From Epithemia pelagica (lineage: Eukaryota > Protista > Bacillariophyta), in contig OX337239.1 in the NCBI GenBank assembly GCA_946965045.2, positions 1,798,001-1,862,000 of the forward strand: a DNA stretch of 64,000 nt, read 5' to 3'. Positions 115-19,614 of the stretch are shown here, one piece after another. A model generated the notes under the pieces. The model did no database searches. It saw only the letters and a list, made by a program, of their open reading frames with translations, and was not told the origin of the DNA. Position 1 is the first letter of the stretch, and each line of letters starts with the position of its first letter. Position numbers and translations under genes: made by a program.

Positions 115-3100
115 CTATGGCACCGAAAGGGACATGCGGATCATGTATTTCTCAATGGAGGATTGCTGAAAGTGCAGAATACGAAAAAAACGTTTGACTC
201 CGCGAGAGCCTTCAGAACGTTCCAGTTGAATTAAGGAGGTGGACAAAATCAGTTGACTCAGGCGCTCCGTCACAAGCTCCAGCGTGGCCTGTTGGGCTTC
301 AAAAAGTAGCAAACGAAATCTGTCTTCCTCTTGAATACTAGGTTCGACCTTGTCCTCGTCATTGAACGAACTACTATCCTCCGGTTGCCCAGTCCCTGTT
401 TGGGCCCATCGAGCAATGTATGAATTCTTCAGGAAATTTCTTGATCGGGCAAGAATAAGGACGCACGATTCCAAGCTTTCAATAACCTCCTCACTTGTAT
501 AACCAATTCGGTCCCACCACAAGGACAAGTGTTCATCTTCAGTGCCTCTACTACCAAGCTGTTTTGCTCTGCCCCTAAGGAACAGCTCTGCTTCGTCGTG
601 CGCTTGATACCGATCCAGAAAAAAGAGAGCGCGTCGTTCCCTTTCATTTTCGGCGGAAGAAACAGGGTCGTAGTGATTGCATGTGTGCGGTTCGTTGTGC
701 GACATGAGGGGAGACAAGCAAAGCCAGCAATAGTCGGTCCCACACTGTGTGCATTTCATATGGTTGCATCCTTCATTCTTTTCCACTGGCACTTGACATG
801 TGGGGCAGGGCTTGGAATTCTTTTGGATCCAAAAGGAAGATTGTGCCACAACTTGGTTCCACATTTGCAACTCATCGCAAGCCGCGGGAAGGTGAGGTTG
901 TTCTCCACAGCCAAAGCAAAAGGATGTCTCACACCTAGAGCATACCACATTCAATGATTTTTCCTTGTTGTGTGTTGCTGAATGGATAATCATTGTACAA
1001 TCGGGCCCAGGACATTGTCGATGGCAGTCATCCATTTCCACAAATTGTGCCAAGAGCGACTGGTTCCATGACATAGACAAATCTGTTCTATCCAGAGCCC
1101 GCAATGTTCGTGGCCCTATGCGCATGTTACAGTTATGTTGTGGACACGTTGCCCGTATCAGTGGCATTTCCTGATGTGCGGCATCCAAATACGAGTGCCA
1201 ACATGGTCGGCAAAATCGATGTTGACAACCCGGATGGGCGAAAGTGTCGTGGAAAGAAAATTCGTCACAACAAACTTGACATTGGAACATGACGGGCTCC
1301 TTACTGTCATCGTTGAAGTTTGTTTCCACATCTTGTTCAGGAGATATCATGATTCCAGAAGTTTCAAGAATCCTTTGAGGATCTCTGGTCAATACTTGGG
1401 TAGTAACTCGGTGTTGATCAAACCGGTACGCCGACAAGAGCAACAAACAAGTTTCCTCGGACAGGGGTAATGGGAAGCCTTGTTGCATTGCCTTTGTTCG
1501 TTCATGTAGTTTCTCTTCTAACCCCTTTAGTCCTCCGAAAGAGTCCATATCAAAAAACCTGAATGAATTATCCCGCGAGTTTCGTTGCCGATGTTCCCCA
1601 ATCCCCTTGTCATCAGAACCACCAAGGCCTCGGCATACTCGTTTGGCATCTCGTTGTACATTTTCATCCTCCCCAATGTCTTCTTCTTTTTCCGACGTCA
1701 TTGTTTGACTGGTACCATAGGCTAAGAAGCTGCAAATGTGAAAGGCCGCTTCTGGATCAACTGGTGCCACGAGAACTTCACACCATTGAATCACGGCGTG
1801 TAATGCCGATGCCACTGGCAGCTCGGTCATGGCCGCAACACTCAACAACGTAGGGAGCAGGGGTGCCAGGAAAGCTTCCCTCTCCTTCTTGCTAGCACTC
1901 ACATGTTGTGGAGAAGACAATACCCGTTGAAAAATCTCCAAGAGCACCGTTAGAGTTTCCTGCAAAGTCTCCTGTAGGTCTTGATGTTGTTCAAAAGTGG
2001 CACATTGAAATAATAGTTTGGCAAGGTCAAACAACCGTGAAGAAGAACTAAGTGATGACCGCGATGATACATGTGTGGCATTGGCAACATGATGACCCAC
2101 GTGGGCAATGATGCCATAGGCCAATTTGCGAGACTCCCGAGACGATTGCGAGTGCAACTTTTGCTGCAATTGTCTTGTACGGTGTCGTGCAAGCAACCGA
2201 TTGAGATCGTTACGACGATGCGAGGCCATTGGGACTCCTAATGGCACTGCTTCCTCTTCTCCTTGTCCTGGGCGTGCAAATGCAGCCATTCCTTCGTTGG
2301 CTTTGCTTTGTGGAATGGTCAGAAGCACAGATTGGGAAATTTCCATGCATTGCTCAAAGAAATCAGTCTTCCAATCTTCCCCCATAGTATCCCCACACGA
2401 TGACCACGCGACGCTCTTGTAGTTTGATATGGAGGGTCGTGAAATAGCATCCTTGCCATTAACTCCCGTCACAATAGGAGAAGAAGAAGATGTGCTTATC
2501 ATGTTGGCCAATGGGTGAATCAGGTGCAAGGCCCAATAAACATTGACTTGTCGAATGGCAGCCACCAGCCGTACGAGCAAGCGTGAGACAAAGGACGAGT
2601 ACTCATTCTTGCTGTATGTCGTCCGTTCAGTGTCTGGAGACGACTGCTTCTGTTCTGGTATAAAAAGATTGGATGACGACAAGCGTTGTTGGAGGTATTG
2701 AATGGCTCGGGCCGCCATGGATGGAGAGACCGACATACGAGACAACGTGGATGGACCAAGGGTTTCCATTCCTTGATGATTGTTGAATGGAGCTGTGGCA
2801 ATGGTCCCCAAGATGAGATTCCATCCAATGCAATCGACCCATCCATCCAAGACCGAATCTAACGTGGTGGCCGCCCAACCCGTCTCATGGTGTGGTGTTG
2901 ACGTGCCCAGTTTGGACTGTGCCTCGCTCCTCTGGACAGAGGGCATGCTTCTTGGCTCCATCGTGGCAGCGGTTACCGTTTCTCGTAGGACCGTCATGGC
3001 GCGATGGTCTCCTAGAATCAGACGAAACAAAGCCCACACAAGAGGGAGGGTTTTCCCTTCGTGAGATTGTTCTTGTTGTTCCAACCAGGAATCCGCAATT

Positions 3101-10185: not shown

Positions 10186-11214
10186 ATGTCGTTCCTTGGG
10201 CAGTTGCGTACGATCTGTCATCACCGTCGAACACATAAAGTATTGATATCACTGGGCGCCTTGGCTGCGTTCACTTCCACGACCACCTTGGTCGTTTCTT
10301 GCTGGCAACCGCAAACATCACGTCAACCATCACGAACGCCAACAGTTCGAATTGCACGGACAAATCGAAGAAGCCGATATCTCTTGGACTCTCTCGAGTC
10401 AATGGAAGCATCCAAAGACAACCCCGAGACAATCCTGCCATGCTCCCAAAGAACGAGCATATCTCCGAATTTGAACATCTCACAATGTCAACCGGCAAAC
10501 GACACCGCACAAACCAAGGCACATTTGGCCCAGACACTGGCAGGCAATGGAGAATTGGAGTCACCCATACGGCGTAAGTTTGACTTTCTTGGAGAAAATG
10601 GCTTGTTGTTCGAAGAAATGCGAATTCCGAATCGAGCGGAATCGGAAAATCACGCCGTCTATGGGACGTTAATGAGAGAACCAGGTCATTTAGAAGAACT
10701 CCGCATCTATCGTCGTCTGTTCCATGACCCTAGCAACCAAACAACTCCATTGCCCATTCCGTCGGCCAATCATGTGGAAAGCGTGGATGAGCGTCGATCA
10801 ATCCGTGGTACGGAGCCAACAGTGAACAAGACGTCCGCCGAAATTCCATTGGTTGTAGCCGTGGTACGCCTTGGACCTAAATTGGATGGTCATGAGGGCA
10901 TTGTCCATGGAGGAGTGACGGCCTTGCTTGTGGATGATGTGTTGGGTTTTGCCTATGAAGCGATTCCTGTAGAAATGGCCATGACGGCAAATCTAAACCT
11001 CAACTTTCGTCGTCCCTTGCTGCCACATACACCGTTTTTGATTCAAACCTTTCTGTTGGAACATGTGGGACGTAAATTGGTCTTTACCGTACGTGTGACA
11101 TCGGTCGACAACAACACGTTGTTTTGTGAAGGCACGAGTGTCTACGTGGTTCCAAAAACAGAATCAAGTCCGCCACGCAAACAAGTGGTACGCGAGATGT
11201 CAGCTAAACTTTGA
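10186..11214 (+). CDS. Hotdog-fold acyl-CoA thioesterase (PaaI/THEM4-like), possibly mitochondrial
   Basis: Motif LDGHEGIVHGGVTALLVDDVLG..AMTANLNLNFRRPL; basic/hydroxylated N-terminal leader. Confidence 0.9.
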   Translation: MSFLGQLRTICHHRRTHKVLISLGALAAFTSTTTLVVSCWQPQTSRQPSRTPTVRIARTNRRSRYLLDSLESMEASKDNPETILPCSQRTSISPNLNISQCQPANDTAQTKAHLAQTLAGNGELESPIRRKFDFLGENGLLFEEMRIPNRAESENHAVYGTLMREPGHLEELRIYRRLFHDPSNQTTPLPIPSANHVESVDERRSIRGTEPTVNKTSAEIPLVVAVVRLGPKLDGHEGIVHGGVTALLVDDVLGFAYEAIPVEMAMTANLNLNFRRPLLPHTPFLIQTFLLEHVGRKLVFTVRVTSVDNNTLFCEGTSVYVVPKTESSPPRKQVVREMSAKL

Positions 11215-11533
11215 CCCATTGAAATCCACGTGCTTTGGAAATTTCCTTCTAAAAACTAGGACCTTTGTCAGCTTGCCGAGGACAGCTTATATGTGACTTG
11301 TTCGCACTATAGGTGTTACATCTTTCGTCCGCTATTATGGACGAATCTTTCCAAGCCCTGTGAATGTCAACGGACTATATCTGCATCAGCAGAGAGAACT
11401 GCTTATGATATGTCTCTTCACACTATTCAATTGGTGTCACGTGCGCATCTCGGGAAGCCTTTTCCACGATTTATATCGTCGCGGCAGATAAGTATGATCC
11501 CCAAGGATCAAGGGTGGCTCCCACAATCTCAAA

Positions 11534-13844
11534 TTAGATTTGCTGTTTGAAACGGTCGCTTGCTTCTTCCTGCAAGCACCGGATATGGAGGTGCTTGGTT
11601 TGATCGTTCGATGCACGCCACGCAGCGACGACTGACTTGTACGTACGAATATCTGCCCCACGGTCGAGACTACCCATTCGTGCCATGGAGTCCATTTCCC
11701 GAAGCAATCTCTCCGCCCGTTTTGGATCGCCAGCATTCTGGTAACAAAAGATGACAGTGTTGTACGTCCAATTTGTTGGGCGAACATCAGAAGTTGTGCT
11801 TGTCTTGTATAGAGTCCACATTCGGCGAAGAAGTGATTCCGCTTTCTTTCCTGCTGAAACATTTCCTTTCGTCCGCGAAAACGTTGTCAGAACTATATGA
11901 AAGCAGCGAGCATCTGGCTTGTAGCGGTCAATCTTGCACTCGTTATACTTGTTGATGAGTTCTCCCAACAGCATGAAAGCACGATCAACCTGACCGGCTT
12001 TGTTGAGTGCCCCAATGACAGTCGTGTACTTGATCACATCAGGACATGCCGAGTCCTCTCCCGAATCGAAGAGAGTCTTGATCCATTCGAAAGACTCGAG
12101 CAGTTTATGAACGGAATCCGAACGATTGGTCTTTGTCCTGAATCAATGACAACTCCCGCGTATTAGAAACTTCTTGGCAATCGCAATCGAATTTCGACAC
12201 GTCTACTTACCAGGCCTTCAACAGTAACGCATAGCTGTATTCATCGGGAGCAGCTGGAACTCTTCCATCACGGTTCAAGTCTCGCCAACGATGCAAAATC
12301 ATCTCCACGCGTTCCGGAGACTCGCGAAAATTCGATTTTGACCATACAGCAAGTAAAGTATTAAAGCTCCGAACAGTGGGAACCGCGTTTTTTAGTCCAG
12401 AGAGATAAGTGTCCACCATCTCCCACAAGATACGCTCTGCGTCGTGGTACTTGTTCCCACAGTTCACGAATACATTGATAAGATTCGAGTAACAAATAGT
12501 GTCTGGCTCCAGGTTGTTGTCTCCATTTTCATAGCGCTCGAGCATGGCACGAAACAACGACTCCGCCCGAGATGCAGCGTCAGGTCTCCCACTGTTCGCC
12601 CAACAGTGGAGTATGCACGTGTAGGTGAATGTGTCAGGACCGCAAGTAGGAGCCATACCGGTGTCACCAAGCTGATGCATTTGACGAAGAAGATGTTCGC
12701 ATGCATCTGGAGCTTCAACTTTCTTTTCTGAGCGTTGCCAGGCATACATTACAGTCGTGAAGATGCGTTTGTCAGGAGGAAGGTTTCCTTTGTAGAACTC
12801 GTGCCACATGAGAGCAAGAACAGTCTCGGCCTTTGCAGCGTCGCCGCGAGACGCATATGCGTGCACTACACTGTTGAAACAACCTCCGTCGGGAGGAGAT
12901 TCTGAGAGTCCTTCATGGTAGTCACATAGCATTTGGCGCAGAAGGAATTCAGCATGCTCTGCTGCTCCAATATCTTTTGATGCCGCCACAGAACGAATAG
13001 AAAGCTCGCTATTGGTAGGTTTCGAAGTCTTTGGGTCAACAATCGTTTTCTTCACAGGTTCTTTTGAACGAGATTTAGGGGGATCCTCTTGGCACGTAGT
13101 GGGAGTGTCAAGATTTTGGCGAAGAGCTGCCGAAAAATCCATTCCAATGCCAACGTCTCCTCTTCCAATCGATGTCCCTATGTCACTCTTATCACATATC
13201 TTTTCTTGTATGAGTACCGTTTTCCTCTCTTTTCCAGAAACTCCATCTGCCTGGCGAGTCCGACCCAAAATATCAAGCTCAGCTGTGAAACGATGTTCTC
13301 CATGCTTCGGCAATCCATAACCTGGAAGGTTTTGGAGGACAAGTGTGAGAACAGAGGTACACCCCAGATGCATTCGAGGTTTATGGAACCATGACTGTTA
13401 TCCTCGCTTCATGATATGATGCCTACCTTCAAGCTTGTCATTGTGGGAAAAGCCGGGAGGAAGAACTTGGGCCGTTGGAGTGACCATTGGGTGTGATCGA
13501 GGAAGACTTTTCAAGTTCTGCTTTTGTCCTTGAACATGACCATTAGTAGTACGATGAATCTTGGGAGGAGGTGTCAGAACATCTTGCGACGAAAACAACG
13601 ACGAGTCTTTGATCCATTTTTCTGTGAGGTAGGGTTCAGTCTTGACGGGGTGATGATGGTCTTTGATAAGGGCGGCGCTTTTCGTTCCAAAAGCCGGGGA
13701 AGGTGGTTGGTTTTCCTTGTTTGCGTCTGACTGAGCTGGAAGAGCTTTCTTCCTTTCCACAGCTTTCGAAAACCCAATAGGAGGATAAGTTGTTCCTCGA
13801 ACATTTCCAATACTGGCGTTCGGATCTCGCTCTCGGAGCGCCAT
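11534..13844 (-). CDS. Pentatricopeptide repeat (PPR) protein, 3 exons
   Basis: About 35-aa PPR units (PDGGCFNSVVHAYA, PDKRIFTTVMYAW, PDTFTYTCILHCWA, PDTICYSNLINVF, PDVIKYTTVIGAL). In-frame GT-AG introns were reconstructed at 13322-13426 and 12138-12210. Confidence 0.9.
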
Positions 13845-15155
13845 GGTTCAAGCAACCGAATGGTCTCTTTACATTTATGTTGGATCTTCCTTTTTGGCTT
13901 TGGCCCTCTTCCAAAAATGAGAGTTGCATGCGATTCGTGACAGCGGACCCCCGCGGAATCTCGGGGTTTGAACGATGAAATTCCCGCGGTGGCGACCGAC
14001 AGAGACAAGCTTCCCGTAAAGCGTCTCCTGATGTAAACGCTAGGGATTTATGCGAGTGAAATTCTGTGCGTCTGGGAATTGTAAGTATCTAACTTCGCGG
14101 TCGCTGAAATATGATATATATCCAAAAGTTGCCGACGTGAAATCGAATTGATACAAGAGTGAATTGAAGCATTCGACGAATGATATAAGGATTCAGGATT
14201 GAAGACAACTTTGACAGTTAGCCACACGCGATGTGGCCGACTCGAATGACATCCAAGAATGGATCCAGGTTCAGGAAATTCAAGGCGCTCTGTAGGATAT
14301 TAGGGTGAATCAACCGATTCCATAGTGTCTCATATGAACAATCCTCGCATAATGTCAGAATTTGAATATCCATACCATGATATTCCGGTATCTTTCCATC
14401 GGTCTGTTTCCGAGTATGAATATGGACTATGCAAAGGAATGGTTCGATCATCGGTTGCTAGGTAGTCACAAGAATGAAATGAACTTGTCCACAGGCAATA
14501 TTGTACTACGATCCAATGCGATGATTCACTCTGCATGGTTCACTCTGCATGGATCGGTTCAGCCCATAAAGTCCAGAAAAGTGTTGACTTGGAGACTCAA
14601 TGTTTCAAGAAATTCAACGAAGACCAGCCAAGCACGATCTCCCAGTCGGACAGTCAATTGTCAAGCGCCACAACAGTACGACATTTCACTTTTGTCAGGC
14701 CTACAGATACAGATTGGGTGAAACAACAAACAACCTCCTTCCGATTCTTTCCCACAGAAATAGGCAGTTCCATCCACTGTAGTTGTAGTTCAGAGTTCGG
14801 AAACAAATCCGGAGCGCCTCCTCAAAGTATGAGCAAATTGATGCCAGATCAAGGTTGTTTGAAGAGCAGGGCATTGACTCCTCGGAATATGACGCCCCAT
14901 GGAACATCGTACATTTGCAATCTGCACATGCACACAACCACAGTCGAGAATAAGATACAGCGCTTGAGAAAGATTTTTGCGACGACAACGGCTACACGAT
15001 TGAGAACTGGTGAATGAAAATGTGCGTCTTTTATGCGACCCAAGAAAGGACTACACTTGAAGCAATGGATTTGATTCCATTCCGATTCTGCTTGCGACTT
15101 CTGGAAAGGTAAAGGAGAGGCGAAGTTGTACTGAGAGACCTCGTAACTCGTAACC

Positions 15156-15771
15156 ATGACGAGACGAAACGACATGATGATGAAGGCGGTGTTGCTGCTC
15201 ATATACGTGGTCTTCTCCCCCGCAAACGCATTTACTGTACAGCCATGTCCTTGGTATGCCTCTTTATCATCTCCTTTATGGACATCACGACCCGCCACAT
15301 TTTCAGGCAAGAGATATATGGCTGAATCGGCAGATCCGGAAGCTGGTGCAGAACCAGACAAACAAGAAAATGAGGATGATGCCAGCTCTTCGTCATCTCC
15401 TGAGTTAGAGGCGGAAACCGACAGCAGTAATTCCATGGCAGAGGATATCTCAACTGAAGGAGGGATGTGGAAAACAGTCTTGCTTGCTGGACCACTGTTT
15501 CTCAAGTTCGTTGTTGTATTGGTGTGAGTATTGGCTCTTGTGATATTATGTGTGATTGGCCATCCCTCGTACGCTTGCTCCTAGGATATCACGGCTTTTT
15601 GTGTACTCATATAATTTCCTCCTCGTTACTGTCGTTCACAGACTCAAGTTCTTGACAGACCTAGTTGTATTTCCGTTATTGTGGCTCTATCGCTTGGCCC
15701 GCTTGACGAAGAAGCAAGTTCTAAAGCTTTTTGGACAAAGCACAGAAACTCCCAACTCTGCAGGGGCATGA
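15156..15771 (+). CDS. Small putative plastid-targeted membrane protein, 2 exons
   Basis: Signal peptide ending ANA-FTV (ASAFAP-like), acidic linker and hydrophobic C-terminus. An intron at 15524-15641 (GTGAGT...CACAG) joins two ORFs in frame. Confidence 0.7.
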
Positions 15772-15886
15772 AATGTGATCGGCATCTTGATGACCCGTGA
15801 ATGTGTATAGTTTTGTATAATACGTTGTAACTAGACCTCCTACCCGCTCGCCTTCATGCCCGATTTGATTGTGGTATGAGTCTTCA

Positions 15887-17116
15887 TCATCGTTGCGCAG
15901 GGTAAAGCGCAAACATAATGAAACTTAGTGCTGCGAGAAGACCTCCAACCCATTGCGAAGCCGACACAGGTTTGTCGGTTTTGCTAAACATGTTTTGAAG
16001 AACACCAGAAAGAAACATTCCTTGTATGAGTGCAAATCCTTTCTGCACGGCGCCGGCATATTTGGTCACCAAACCAACAAGTATACCTCCGGCCGCATTC
16101 GTTGCTATTGGAATCAACGTTGCCACTGTCCAGCCCACTGTGATCCTTTCTTCACGGCAGCGCCTTCCATCTGGTGTCCAAGGCAACAACAGATTTAAAA
16201 AGTCAAACAAAGCTGATATTGCCGACATTTCCAGTGACAGCAGTAGGGTGTTCCTTTTCAAAACCTGTAAATTCTTTTGAGTCAAACTTCCAGCTAGACC
16301 AGATATCAAGCTTGCCATCAGGGCTGGTAAAACTCCCGAAAACCATCTCATTCGACGCCTTGCCATCTCATCTTCCTCGACAGTTTCGGTTGAGGTTACG
16401 AATGGAATCGCTATTATTGATTCCATCACAAGAGCAGATAGCAACAAGATTACCAATGCCAGCATCTGCTGAGGAGTTTGTCTTTGTCCCAACAAGAAGA
16501 AACAGCAAACAGCAGCCGAAAGAGTTTTGGTCTGGTTCAGAACATTGAACGTGATGGGTGAAAGATTCTGATAAGCCTGTAGCTGACAGTAGTTTTGAAA
16601 CACATATAGAAGGGCTGGCAATCCAGCTGCCGATAGAGAACTTGACCACGTCCATCCCAACGTCGCTTCATGTAGGCTTCCAGTCAGCAAAAGGCATGCC
16701 AAACTAGAGAAAAACCGGATCACATCTTGAACAAAGACATATGTGCCCTTGATCATGTTTTTCGGTGCATGTAGTTTCGTGAGCAAAGGCTGAAAGCCAT
16801 ATTGAAGTGCAAGAAGTGCCATGTACAAAGAGCCCAACGCAGTCGAAGCCTCGCCTCCAACTAGAAAGGATGAATGCAGCCTTATTCTGTTTGTTTTCCA
16901 GTTGTTGGAGACAGGAGAGTCCATGAACAAGTTATTCGATTGGGTTGTGGTCATATGTTCCTCCTGTATGCGATACGACGAGCTGTGGGGTGCAATGTAT
17001 GGTCTTGCCGATCTCGAAAACGCCGCTGCATCTGGAAAAAATACGAAACAAACTAGTGTAATATATGTAACGTAAAAGACCGCATCCAATGTTCCCCGGT
17101 TCAAAGAGACACCCAT
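15887..17116 (-). CDS. Nucleotide-sugar transporter (SLC35A-like) with N-terminal leader
   Basis: LALQYGFQPLL, PALLYVFQN, ITFNVLNQTKTLSAA, SGLAGSLTQK, GGILVGLVTKY..VQKGF. The first ATG is at 17116. Confidence 0.9.
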   Translation of the reverse strand: MGVSLNRGTLDAVFYVTYITLVCFVFFPDAAAFSRSARPYIAPHSSSYRIQEEHMTTTQSNNLFMDSPVSNNWKTNRIRLHSSFLVGGEASTALGSLYMALLALQYGFQPLLTKLHAPKNMIKGTYVFVQDVIRFFSSLACLLLTGSLHEATLGWTWSSSLSAAGLPALLYVFQNYCQLQAYQNLSPITFNVLNQTKTLSAAVCCFFLLGQRQTPQQMLALVILLLSALVMESIIAIPFVTSTETVEEDEMARRRMRWFSGVLPALMASLISGLAGSLTQKNLQVLKRNTLLLSLEMSAISALFDFLNLLLPWTPDGRRCREERITVGWTVATLIPIATNAAGGILVGLVTKYAGAVQKGFALIQGMFLSGVLQNMFSKTDKPVSASQWVGGLLAALSFIMFALYPAQR

Positions 17117-17608
17117 TCCCAGTCGTTCAAACCTCACTTGTTGTGATTTCGATTGTGCCAATGGCAACTGTTTCAAAAAATGGGGAAAGGTGCGCCATCA
17201 GGATTTTGGAAGATCGCGGTGGCAGCTACGGATAAAAACGTTGGACGCGAGTCGGTCGCAGAAAGATGTTTCCATCAGATGAACTTTTGATGCTGGTAGC
17301 TGGTAGGAGATGTGTTAGGAGTAGATGGAAGATGAGCTTGCTGATCGGTATGATAATGATAACTGCAGATCGCTCGAAACTAAGGGATCACAGAAGGCTG
17401 CAAAAAGGAAAGGTTGATCATTTAACTGCCACCATGTCTTCTGCCATCATTCTTCAACAAGCTATCGGAACTAACGAGTTGGCAATCCGGAATGGACAGC
17501 GACCGAGGCATGTAAGAGGCACAAAATGAATCTAGCAGCTTGTTGTTACTTCAAATCAAGAATGGAATGACTCGTAGCAGGCAACGCGTTGTATTTCTTC
17601 ATTCCACT

Positions 17609-18595
17609 TTATAAATCGGGAGATGAATCTTTCGAGGCATCTCCAGTTGTAAAATAGTTCTCCTGTAATATTCTGATACAGTCTTGCACCCAGGCAATGC
17701 TGACAACGGCAATGGCCCACTTGAGAACAGACCAAAAAATGGATAAGCCAATGGGGATACCATTCTTTTTGCCATGAACGAACAAACTGTACGTCATGTG
17801 ACCAAACATGGCCCAACCAAAGAAGGTGCGAACAAAAATGTACGACACACAAAACAGGAAAGTTGTGACATAATCTGCCGTTCTCAACCATCCAAGTTCC
17901 TTGCAGCAGTCGAGCTTCAACGCCGTAGATGTCATGTAATATCCATTTTGAAATGGATTGGTGACTTCGCCAAGGACTATCAACATCATGACTGCAACAT
18001 GGCCTGCATCTACCATCCGCGCAGACGTGATCATTACCACCACAATAGCATGGTGTGCCAAGAACGCATAGTCCGAGGGATCTACATCTCCATTTATGAT
18101 CATGGCACAAAAGTCATACATCATATAACCTGTGCAGAACTGCATCAAAGCATGACTTGCATCTTGCCACCATAACGGAGCCTCGGACATTTTTTCACAG
18201 GGAAGATACCGTCTTCTCACGAAGAGGAGACAGCAACCTGAAACAACCAACGTCGAGTGAAGGATCCCAACAGCGGATGCTGCTACCAACTGTTGACTTT
18301 TATCTTTCGGAAAACCACCATAGTTGACAAGGAGTGATTGGACAGCAGCATTGATACATCCGAGAACCCAAAACGTGGCAAAGCACACAGAAAAGTCCAG
18401 CGGTGATCCACCCAGGCCAATGGGAAGTTTAACTTGAAGAGGAAGAGAGGAGGAGAGATTGCTCCAGACCTGTAGAATCATTGAAATATCATTGTTCGAA
18501 GTCTTCATCTCTTCGTCTTTGTCTCGCAACGATTCGGGTGGGAAGAATCCCTCCTTCCAGTCGCCTAGAATATGTGTGCTCTCATTAAGTCCCAT
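17609..18595 (-). CDS. TLC (TRAM/LAG1/CLN8) domain membrane protein
   Basis: GYMMYDF, AFLAHHAIV and LGEVTNPFQN motifs with multiple TM segments. The start is uncertain (ATGs at 18595, 18508, 18481). Confidence 0.85.
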   Translation of the reverse strand: MGLNESTHILGDWKEGFFPPESLRDKDEEMKTSNNDISMILQVWSNLSSSLPLQVKLPIGLGGSPLDFSVCFATFWVLGCINAAVQSLLVNYGGFPKDKSQQLVAASAVGILHSTLVVSGCCLLFVRRRYLPCEKMSEAPLWWQDASHALMQFCTGYMMYDFCAMIINGDVDPSDYAFLAHHAIVVVMITSARMVDAGHVAVMMLIVLGEVTNPFQNGYYMTSTALKLDCCKELGWLRTADYVTTFLFCVSYIFVRTFFGWAMFGHMTYSLFVHGKKNGIPIGLSIFWSVLKWAIAVVSIAWVQDCIRILQENYFTTGDASKDSSPDL

Positions 18596-19038
18596 GTAAT
18601 TCGGGACCCAATAAGACACAGGTTTGCTCGTGCTCCCGGAGATCCAGTCTCTTGCACAGAGTACGAAAGTCCTCGAAAATGCAACCTGTGTTCCGCCTAA
18701 TGGGTTCTGTCGCACTGTTCTTTGCGGTTTTCATCCATCAAGCTCAAATTCTTAGAGTCACGTATCCCCTCCAGCACAATGATCTTCAAATAGATCACAT
18801 TCGTGGACGCTGGAGATTTTGAATGGTTTTGCGTTCGACGCAAGCAGGTGGCAAACGTCATCGCTACATGGATACATCACCTCGCTATCGTCACAGTCAA
18901 ATCGTTGCACCTACGTACTTTCGCCTTTCGTGGACCCCCAATCCATCAAAACCAAACAAAGCGTATCTCCACGAAACATCAAAGTTTGAGAAGCAGCACA
19001 TTGTCTCGTAAGAAACCAAAACCAAAACAAACTCCAAG

Positions 19039-19614
19039 ATGAAGACCAGTTTCTCCATTGCCGCCGCTGCTTTGATCGCCGCTTCTGCCGAGGCTTTCAC
19101 TATCTCCTCCGACTCTGTCCGCACTTCCACCGAGCTTTACAAGTACCGCCCTACCAAGTGGACTCCTCAGTACGGTTCCACTGGCAGTGCCACCTCCAGC
19201 AGTCCCTCTTACGGTGCTCCCTCTTACAGTGCTGCTCCCCCTGCCGCCCCAGCTGATGCCGCAGCTGCCCCTTCGTACGGTGGTATGCCCTCGGCACCCA
19301 AGGGAGACTACTCCGGTGTCAAGTGGAGTCCCCAAGGAGGCGCCAACCCCGGCTTCTCCGGACCCCCCTCTGCTGGTGCCGCCGCCCCTGTTGCCGCGGC
19401 CGCTGCTCCGGCTGCCCCTGCCGCCTCTGGCCCTTCTTTGGATGACCTTGCCGCTCAATGGGCCGCCATGAACAGTGACCACGACGGTGTCCCACCTCCT
19501 CAAATGAACCATACTCCTCCCCCGGCCGCCCCTCCTGCTCCACCTGCCGCCCCCGCTGGTCCCACTATGGCTGACCTTGCATCACAATGGGCCTCCATGA
19601 ACAGCTCCGACTAA
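19039..19614 (+). CDS. PYCO1: PYCO1-like pyrenoid Rubisco-linker candidate (plastid-targeted, Pro/Ala-rich, sticker repeats)
   Basis: Signal peptide plus AEA-FT leader; KWTP (19156) and KWSP (19321); DLAAQWAAMN (from 19444) and DLASQWASMN (from 19573); Tyr-spaced disordered linkers; many C-ending codons. Similarity to P. tricornutum PYCO1 motifs is from recall. Confidence 0.75.
   Translation: MKTSFSIAAAALIAASAEAFTISSDSVRTSTELYKYRPTKWTPQYGSTGSATSSSPSYGAPSYSAAPPAAPADAAAAPSYGGMPSAPKGDYSGVKWSPQGGANPGFSGPPSAGAAAPVAAAAAPAAPAASGPSLDDLAAQWAAMNSDHDGVPPPQMNHTPPPAAPPAPPAAPAGPTMADLASQWASMNSSD

Follow-up and report, generated by a model that had tools for sequence, protein, structure and literature searches.

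A short PYCO1-like protein with two kinds of predicted Rubisco-binding motif in the diatom Epithemia pelagica

In the analyzed window, a stretch of 64,000 nucleotides from contig OX337239.1 of Epithemia pelagica (GCA_946965045.2), positions 19039-19614 of the plus strand form an intact ORF with a single exon, 191 codons long before the stop. We consider it a complete coding sequence, its termini aligning end to end with those of an annotated protein from a congeneric species (P0001). The product is composed mainly of Ala (47 residues, 25%), Pro (30, 16%), Ser (28, 15%) and Gly (15, 8%), includes 7 tyrosines, and is acidic, with a pI of 4.85 and 7 Lys and Arg residues against 11 Asp and Glu. 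All four Trp residues are inside short motifs, two of the KW[ST]P type, KWTP at aa 40-43 (W41) and KWSP at aa 95-98 (W96), and two of the DLAxQWAxMN type, with QWAAMN at aa 140-145 (W141) and QWASMN at aa 183-188 (W184). The ORF and its four motifs are present exactly as described in the first-pass annotation of this stretch, and the pattern is not random. When the residues following the signal peptide were shuffled 200,000 times, the combination of two plus two motifs was never recovered (0/200,000), with at least one KW[ST]P appearing in 960 shuffles and at least one QWAxMN in 14.

Codon usage in this gene is unusual. At four-fold degenerate positions the shares are C 47%, T 42%, A 8% and G 4%, so that 89% are C- or T-ending against about 52% in the neighbors, where 20 pooled ORFs give roughly 26/26/26/21 for C/T/A/G. 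The codon bias previously proposed is thus real, but it is pyrimidine-ending rather than C-ending only; it is compatible with high expression, without being proof of it. The exact product has no match in a public collection of 15 billion proteins, in which neighboring genes of the same contig are present, so the gene appears to have been left uncalled in assembly ERZ21939226. A 311-aa fragment of the neighboring transporter is there with 100% identity, while one adjacent ORF likewise gave no exact match. A Gly/Arg-rich antisense ORF of 177 aa (18979-19512, minus strand), with no protein on record in an exact look-up, was discarded as a by-product of the GC-rich, repetitive GCC/CCT-rich coding strand, and an RWSPR at window position 3002 was discarded as a chance match inside an unrelated large gene. 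The Rubisco genes rbcL and rbcS are plastid-encoded and neither is in the window.

The best database match is ACA910_020502 (P0001), an annotated 184-aa protein of Epithemia clementina, with 68% identity over the full length (E 6e-60). Five genes are collinear between window positions 10186-19614 and E. clementina, encoding a 4HBT thioesterase (+), a PPR protein (-), a nucleotide-sugar transporter (-), a TLC-domain protein (-) and the PYCO1-like protein (+), and this shared order makes the 191-aa gene and ACA910_020502 positional orthologues. The gene order is kept even though protein identity is only about 62-68%. By the Nei-Gojobori method, the two orthologues differ with a dS of about 1.1 and a dN of 0.18 (dN/dS 0.16). 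The constraint is concentrated on the four motif blocks, which are 84% identical without gaps, against 67% identity and 17 gap columns in the spacers. Since the neighboring sugar transporter is 62% identical to its Epithemia orthologue, the conservation of the disordered 191-aa protein is not below that of a membrane transporter. Blocks shared with the Epithemia orthologue by conservation make up about 40% of the protein, which does not agree with the previous description of it as almost all spacer.

The N-terminus begins with a putative ER-type signal peptide, read from the sequence (aa 1-19, 19039-19095, plus strand), with a hydrophobic segment ending in ASAEA before F20, a Phe that is invariant in 9/9 aligned homologues. 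A signal peptide followed by Phe is a hallmark of diatom stromal presequences. It is followed by a Ser/Thr-rich, probably transit-peptide-like stretch ending in ..RTSTEL (aa 20-33, 19096-19137). In the PDB, the family profile gave weak matches only, to the presequences of diatom FCP8 (E 0.086) and PsbO (E 0.31), whose transit-peptide ends ..TTSLN and ..STQLN align with the ..STELY of the 191-aa protein. From inspection of the sequence and these weak profile matches, a diatom bipartite plastid presequence is present, and the plastid leader noted in the first-pass annotation is maintained.

Just downstream, the first sticker of the small-subunit type (aa 34-47, 19138-19179, plus strand) reads YKYRPT-KWTP-QYGS; in the family alignment Y36, T39, K40, W41, P43 and G46 do not vary, and the segment fits the family logo Y-x-x-T-K-W-S/T-P-R/Q-G-G-S/A. 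This sticker probably opens the mature protein, which, if cleaved at the transit-peptide-like end, would have sticker 1 as its extreme N-terminus and helix 2 (see below) as its extreme C-terminus. Spacer 1 (aa 48-76, 19180-19266), Ser/Ala/Pro-rich with SY dipeptides, is poorly conserved, showing indels relative to the Epithemia orthologue and pLDDT values below 50. A full PYCO1-type repeat with the second sticker follows (aa 77-108, 19267-19362), APSYGGMP..DYSGV-KWSP-QGGANPGF, assigned by Pfam PF24428 and by alignment with PYCO1 451-487, a segment that includes W476.

After the Ala/Pro-rich spacer 2 (aa 109-133, 19363-19437), delimited by the AlphaFold2 model and the Epithemia comparison, comes the first helix of the large-subunit type, LDDLAAQWAAMN (aa 134-145, 19438-19473), aligned with PYCO1 ASEWASMN 532-539 and fitting the family logo M-A-D-L-A-x-Q/E-W-A-x-M-N. 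Spacer 3 (aa 146-176, 19474-19566), delimited by the Epithemia comparison, opens with a conserved SDHDGVPPPQMN tail, and the C-terminal helix 2, MADLASQWASMN (aa 177-188, 19567-19602), aligns with PYCO1 AAEWGSMN 577-584, with W184 corresponding to W580 and N188 to N584. All these features are on the plus strand, and both helices were assigned from the AlphaFold2 model and the PYCO1 alignment. Using S for the small-subunit-type sticker and L for the large-subunit-type helix, the architecture is S-S-L-L, one full repeat plus an N-terminal sticker. The N-SDHDGVPPPQMN segment after helix 1 (19471-19509, aa 145-157) is the same in the Epithemia orthologue except for one inserted Ala, and it is echoed by SDHDGAPP in P0003, by P-x-PQM in P0004 and P0018, and by MN-x-DHD in the giant helix-repeat proteins described below. 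Judging from these resemblances, the large-subunit motif may have a conserved extension in this tail.

PYCO1 (Phatr3_J49957) is the pyrenoid Rubisco linker of Phaeodactylum tricornutum (Oh et al. 2023, PMC10288592). According to that paper, its sticker KWSPRGGS forms a tetrad on the Rubisco small subunits, with W476 being essential; on the large subunit, AAEWGSMNQ (577-585) occupies a hydrophobic cleft through W580 and N584; and ASEWASMNT (532-540) is a likely second large-subunit motif. The Rubisco residues contacted by PYCO1 are N105, N133 and G137 in the small subunit and Y89, D92, F102, F104, L361, F366 and F482 in the large one. Both binding modes were defined from a cryo-EM complex of PYCO1 452-592 with Rubisco (PMC10288592). 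The facts on PYCO1 given in the first-pass annotation, KWSP on the small subunit and an EWGSMN helix on the large one, agree with this account. We recovered PYCO1 at L012:2180-3955 of the JGI contig Ga0163101_100141, as a protein of 592 aa with 6 KWSP and 5 GTGYNP; its length, W476, W580, N584 and the computed pI of 10.03 match those in PMC10288592. The PYCO1 chain was not found in the PDB by sequence search, neither with the single protein nor with the family profile.

BLASTP of the 191-aa protein against PYCO1 returned several collinear segments (best E 7e-08), and in a multiple alignment aa 76-191 are collinear with PYCO1 450-592, with 41% of residues identical. Invariant positions are the Tyr preceding the sticker, KWSP, GG, and the LA, W, M and N of the helices. 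The stickers KWTPQYGS (aa 40-47) and KWSPQGGA (aa 95-102) have the critical Trp, Ser/Thr and Pro, and their departures (QYGS, QGGA) do not exceed the variation among the six stickers of PYCO1 itself, e.g. KWSPQNGA, and in the family logo. In PYCO1, 532-540 and 577-585 are the aligned counterparts of AAQWAAMNS and ASQWASMNS, in which Gln takes the place of Glu. With the motifs in register, the PYCO1-like homology previously suggested is borne out.

PF24428 (PYCO1_repeat) matches aa 77-108 over profile positions 1-38 with 20.8 bits (E 3.4e-4), under the gathering cut-off of 27. The relatives P0001, P0005 and P0003 score 28.1, 34.5 and 41.9 bits, PYCO1 itself 376.6, and 8/8 close homologues carry the domain. 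Since the 191-aa protein matches P0001 at E 6e-60, its membership in the PF24428 family follows by transitivity. From these comparisons, we consider the 191-aa protein a true PYCO1 homologue, in effect the natural counterpart of PYCO1 452-592 with one more intact N-terminal KWSP sticker.

A signal peptide, a low-complexity P/A/S composition and a sub-threshold Pfam match of 20.8 bits would also fit a secreted or wall-associated Pro/Ala/Ser-rich protein unrelated to Rubisco, resembling PYCO1 by chance or composition. We regard this as highly improbable, as the Phe at +1 after the signal peptide is invariant, the protein is collinear with PYCO1 450-592 for both motif types in the same order, and none of the 200,000 shuffles had the pattern. 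It is also at odds with the rarity of the family, with only 37 related clusters among 1.84 billion representative proteins and named members that are all raphid pennate diatoms.

The AlphaFold2 model, run with the family alignment, is a disordered chain with a mean pLDDT of 53. Its two longest helices, 134-145 and 177-188, are both Trp-Met-Asn motifs; helix 177-188 has the highest pLDDT of the model (blocks of 76-83) and the block 131-140 has a mean of 70, above the spacers. The other helices, 10-14 in the signal peptide and 32-35, are short and of low confidence. This prediction is in line with the PYCO1 large-subunit motif being helical when bound. In this model of the isolated chain, the KWSP stickers have no order, which would be expected if they fold only within the tetrad on Rubisco.

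The profile search at E <= 1e-3 that returned the 37 clusters also revealed a modular family, with S-only, L-only and mixed proteins by motif count in the clusters. The logos of the two stickers are K-N-Y-S-V-T-K-W-S-P-R/Q-G-G-S/A-x-P (S) and M-A-D-L-A-x-Q/E-W-A-x-M-N (L). Five clusters are S-S-L forms of 129-141 aa; the 191-aa protein and its Epithemia orthologue are S-S-L-L; forms in which S and L alternate span 200-560 aa, S-only proteins reach 19 stickers and L-only proteins 34 strict helix copies. Most members have a pI of 9.4-11.1, the S-S-L forms being basic. Homologues of 129-134 aa with two small-subunit stickers and one helix exist, and the 191-aa protein can no longer be called minimal, as had been proposed; it resembles an S-S-L form whose helix has been duplicated. 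The few members with an organism name belong to Epithemia, Entomoneis and Phaeodactylum, all raphid pennates, and the family may be limited to this group, a claim that rests on few named taxa.

Within E. pelagica, the 191-aa protein is the smallest of several sticker proteins. The contig of the 191-aa gene (ERZ21939226:ctg1358l) also carries P0003, a 284-aa paralogue with 4 S and 3 L, and the same genome (ERZ21939226) encodes P0014 (L006:1001-6649), with 1882 aa and 12 strict helix copies, and P0010 (L007:1001-13402), with 4133 aa and 34 strict DLAxxWGxMN-x-DHD copies. The last two are giant acidic ORFs from a prokaryote-style gene caller, with introns unaccounted for. In P0010, 58 stretches match the profile, often with a spacing of 57 aa. 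Together with a 972-aa ORF of P. tricornutum, P0014 and P0010 represent the diatom proteins with repeats of the large-subunit helix. They share with the 191-aa protein the helix M-x-D-L-A-x-x-W-x-x-M-N, often followed by a D-H-D or E-D-D tail as after helix 1. In contrast, they have this helix type only, in 10 to more than 30 copies, with no KWSP, and are long and acidic, some with coiled-coil tails.

A published relative is the short PYCO1 isoform of P. tricornutum, Phatr3_J40791, to which we assigned XP_002184799 / B7GCF2 (P0058) by its features. In the PYCO1 paper, BLAST is reported to have recovered only this isoform, from the same genome (PMC10288592). Within the PYCO1 literature, as far as its accessible text goes, the isoform is named in that original paper only, without characterization, and we found no description of PYCO1 homologues in other diatoms. 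A later preprint states that PYCO1 is not widely conserved and is absent from centric diatoms. Like the 191-aa protein, the isoform is small and has the presequence, the N-terminal signature L-Y/F-KYRPT, a KWSP sticker and a C-terminal LAAEW/QW..MN helix. However, it has one intact sticker, one helix, two GTGYNP, a Q/N/S-rich spacer and a pI of 9.1. Positional orthology between the two was rejected, with no synteny within 10 kb on either side. The chromosomes of both genes carry a homologous sugar-transporter gene. The idea that the 191-aa protein is undescribed is therefore only partly right: the short isoform had been named and PF24428, which models the repeat, already tags such proteins, but a conserved short form with both sticker types appears to have no account in print, judging from the accessible literature.

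With PYCO1 itself, the 191-aa protein shares the plastid presequence, the disorder, the small-subunit sticker Y-x-x-x-KWSP-R/Q-GG-S/A within an APSY..MP repeat, and the two terminal L-A-x-E/Q-W-x-S/A-M-N helices. On the other hand, PYCO1 has 592 aa and 6 stickers, against 191 aa and 2 stickers in E. pelagica; its spacers are Ser/Gly/Asn-rich and prion-like, not Ala/Pro-rich; its pI is 10.03, not 4.85; it has 5 GTGYNP, against none; and its N-terminal sticker position, intact in the 191-aa protein, is degenerate (..THTTWKTG..). PYCO1 is described in PMC10288592 as basic and prion-like, with six tandem repeats of about 80 aa and a pI of 10.03, and its homotypic phase separation as driven by the tyrosines of GTGYNP. 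None of the features of such a self-condensing scaffold, that is, the homotypic GTGYNP motif, a basic prion-like sequence and six repeats, is found in the 191-aa protein. As it is acidic, without GTGYNP, and has Ala/Pro-rich spacers, a salt-driven homotypic condensation like that of PYCO1 is not expected, and its sequence suggests that it probably does not self-condense.

Judged by homology, the 191-aa protein very likely binds Rubisco in the CO2-fixing pyrenoid. The analysis establishes the gene, its conservation, its homology with PYCO1 in register with the stickers known from structure, and the predicted helices and disorder; plastid and pyrenoid location, Rubisco binding and a cross-linking role are what we infer. 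Our preferred reading, which we consider probable, is that in the pyrenoid matrix it serves as a heterotypic cross-linker or adaptor of low valency, alongside multivalent paralogues, and not as a self-condensing scaffold. It would be a nuclear-encoded, stroma-targeted, intrinsically disordered protein of the PYCO1 family in a raphid pennate diatom host. Once imported, the mature protein (about 15-16 kDa) would present four predicted Rubisco-binding elements separated by 43-55 residues. By homology with the W476-type stickers of PYCO1, the two KW[ST]P stickers would pack Trp-to-GGS with others, in a four-sticker plug on the small subunits around the central channel. By homology with PYCO1 W580 and N584, the two amphipathic DLAxQWAxMN helices would each place their Trp in the hydrophobic large-subunit cleft. 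Since the plug needs four stickers and a molecule gives at most two, two to four molecules would have to meet per Rubisco pole, and the helices and second stickers could reach or bridge neighboring holoenzymes.

Some observations weigh against the cross-linker reading. The PF24428 score of 20.8 bits is under the gathering cut-off of 27, the protein is acidic while PYCO1 and most relatives are basic, and both GTGYNP and S/G/N/Q-rich prion-like spacers are lacking. Sticker 1 has Tyr instead of the first Gly of the GGS groove. Moreover, PMC10288592 reports that the PYCO1 helices bind weakly and that PYCO1(483-592), with both helices and no sticker, gave no gel shift.

Another explanation would be that the protein is by itself a sufficient condenser, with two plus two motifs phase-separating Rubisco through a valency supplied by sticker tetramerization, as the ancestral core linker of raphid pennates. 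S-S-L and S-S-L-L are the best conserved and most widespread architectures of the family (the five clusters of 129-141 aa plus E. pelagica and E. clementina), the short form is syntenic between genera and under purifying selection, the codon bias suggests abundance, and PYCO1 stickers are reported to oligomerize (PMC10288592). Even so, we find this explanation unlikely, because PYCO1(452-592), with one S and two L, is reported in the accessible portion of that paper only as giving a defined Rubisco complex by gel shift, with weakly binding large-subunit helices, and because the 191-aa protein lacks a homotypic sticker and the multi-sticker paralogues of the same genome are more obvious scaffolds. 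The broader proposal, in which Rubisco of raphid pennates is ancestrally and generally condensed by the short S-S-L(-L) proteins instead of the six-repeat PYCO1, is in our judgment doubtful. If it were true, a mature protein of about 100-150 residues would suffice, since KWSP stickers would self-assemble into tetrads on Rubisco; the valency of the network would come from sticker oligomerization rather than repeat number, with PYCO1 and the giant helix-repeat proteins being lineage-specific elaborations of a two-sticker toolkit.

The acidic pI of 4.85, against 9.4-11.1 in most family members and 10.03 in PYCO1, would fit a different role, that of a valency cap or regulator, which binds Rubisco or sticker tetrads and competes or pairs electrostatically with basic linkers, tuning matrix fluidity, size or dissolution. 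Its low valency and the co-existence of higher-valency paralogues in the genome are consistent with this role, and so is the effect of stoichiometry on condensate properties reported in PMC10288592. However, the Epithemia orthologue has a near-neutral pI of 8.0 and the S-S-L forms are basic, indicating that acidity is lineage-specific and not a conserved property of short forms, and we give this role only a small chance of being the right one. The cross-linker, condenser and cap readings are not mutually exclusive.

The nearest functional analogues are EPYC1 of Chlamydomonas and CsLinker of Chlorella, which are also disordered, with spaced short stickers, and build the pyrenoid matrix. Their stickers bind the Rubisco small subunit in EPYC1 and the large subunit in CsLinker. 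They differ from the 191-aa protein in having no sequence homology to it, in being partners of form IB and not form ID Rubisco, and in having 5-6 stickers of a single kind; an oligomerization of the PYCO1 type was not found described for their stickers in the accessible text of the sources. Diatoms use the two stickers in varying combinations, with S-only, L-only and mixed proteins.

About a fifth of global CO2 is fixed by diatoms in pyrenoids, and PYCO1 is the only matrix linker known for them. No fewer than two other genera of raphid pennates have, at a syntenic locus, a small protein that conserves both of its sticker types in register. With two plus two motifs in some 150 residues, this natural protein would be a handy reagent to determine the numbers of stickers of each kind needed for binding or condensing form ID Rubisco, and to see whether sticker oligomerization can replace valency. 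It would also be of interest for the engineering of small linkers.

In P. tricornutum, PYCO1 and the short isoform are about 10 kb apart on opposite strands (L011/L012 of Ga0163101_100141). The 972-aa ORF (L008:11664-14582, plus strand, CM000627.1) lies 0.8 kb downstream of the short isoform gene, which suggests a small cluster of pyrenoid-linker genes formed by PYCO1, the short isoform and the helix-repeat ORF. This ORF has a signal-like N-terminus, one LAREWATLN helix and ten 55-aa repeats, each with NLAKEWASMNREDDSR; its tail, of some 300 aa, is a coiled coil. What has been called at this place is a 476-aa gene on the minus strand plus a 170-aa fragment, and the ORF therefore looks like a mis-annotated multivalent protein with stickers of the large-subunit type.
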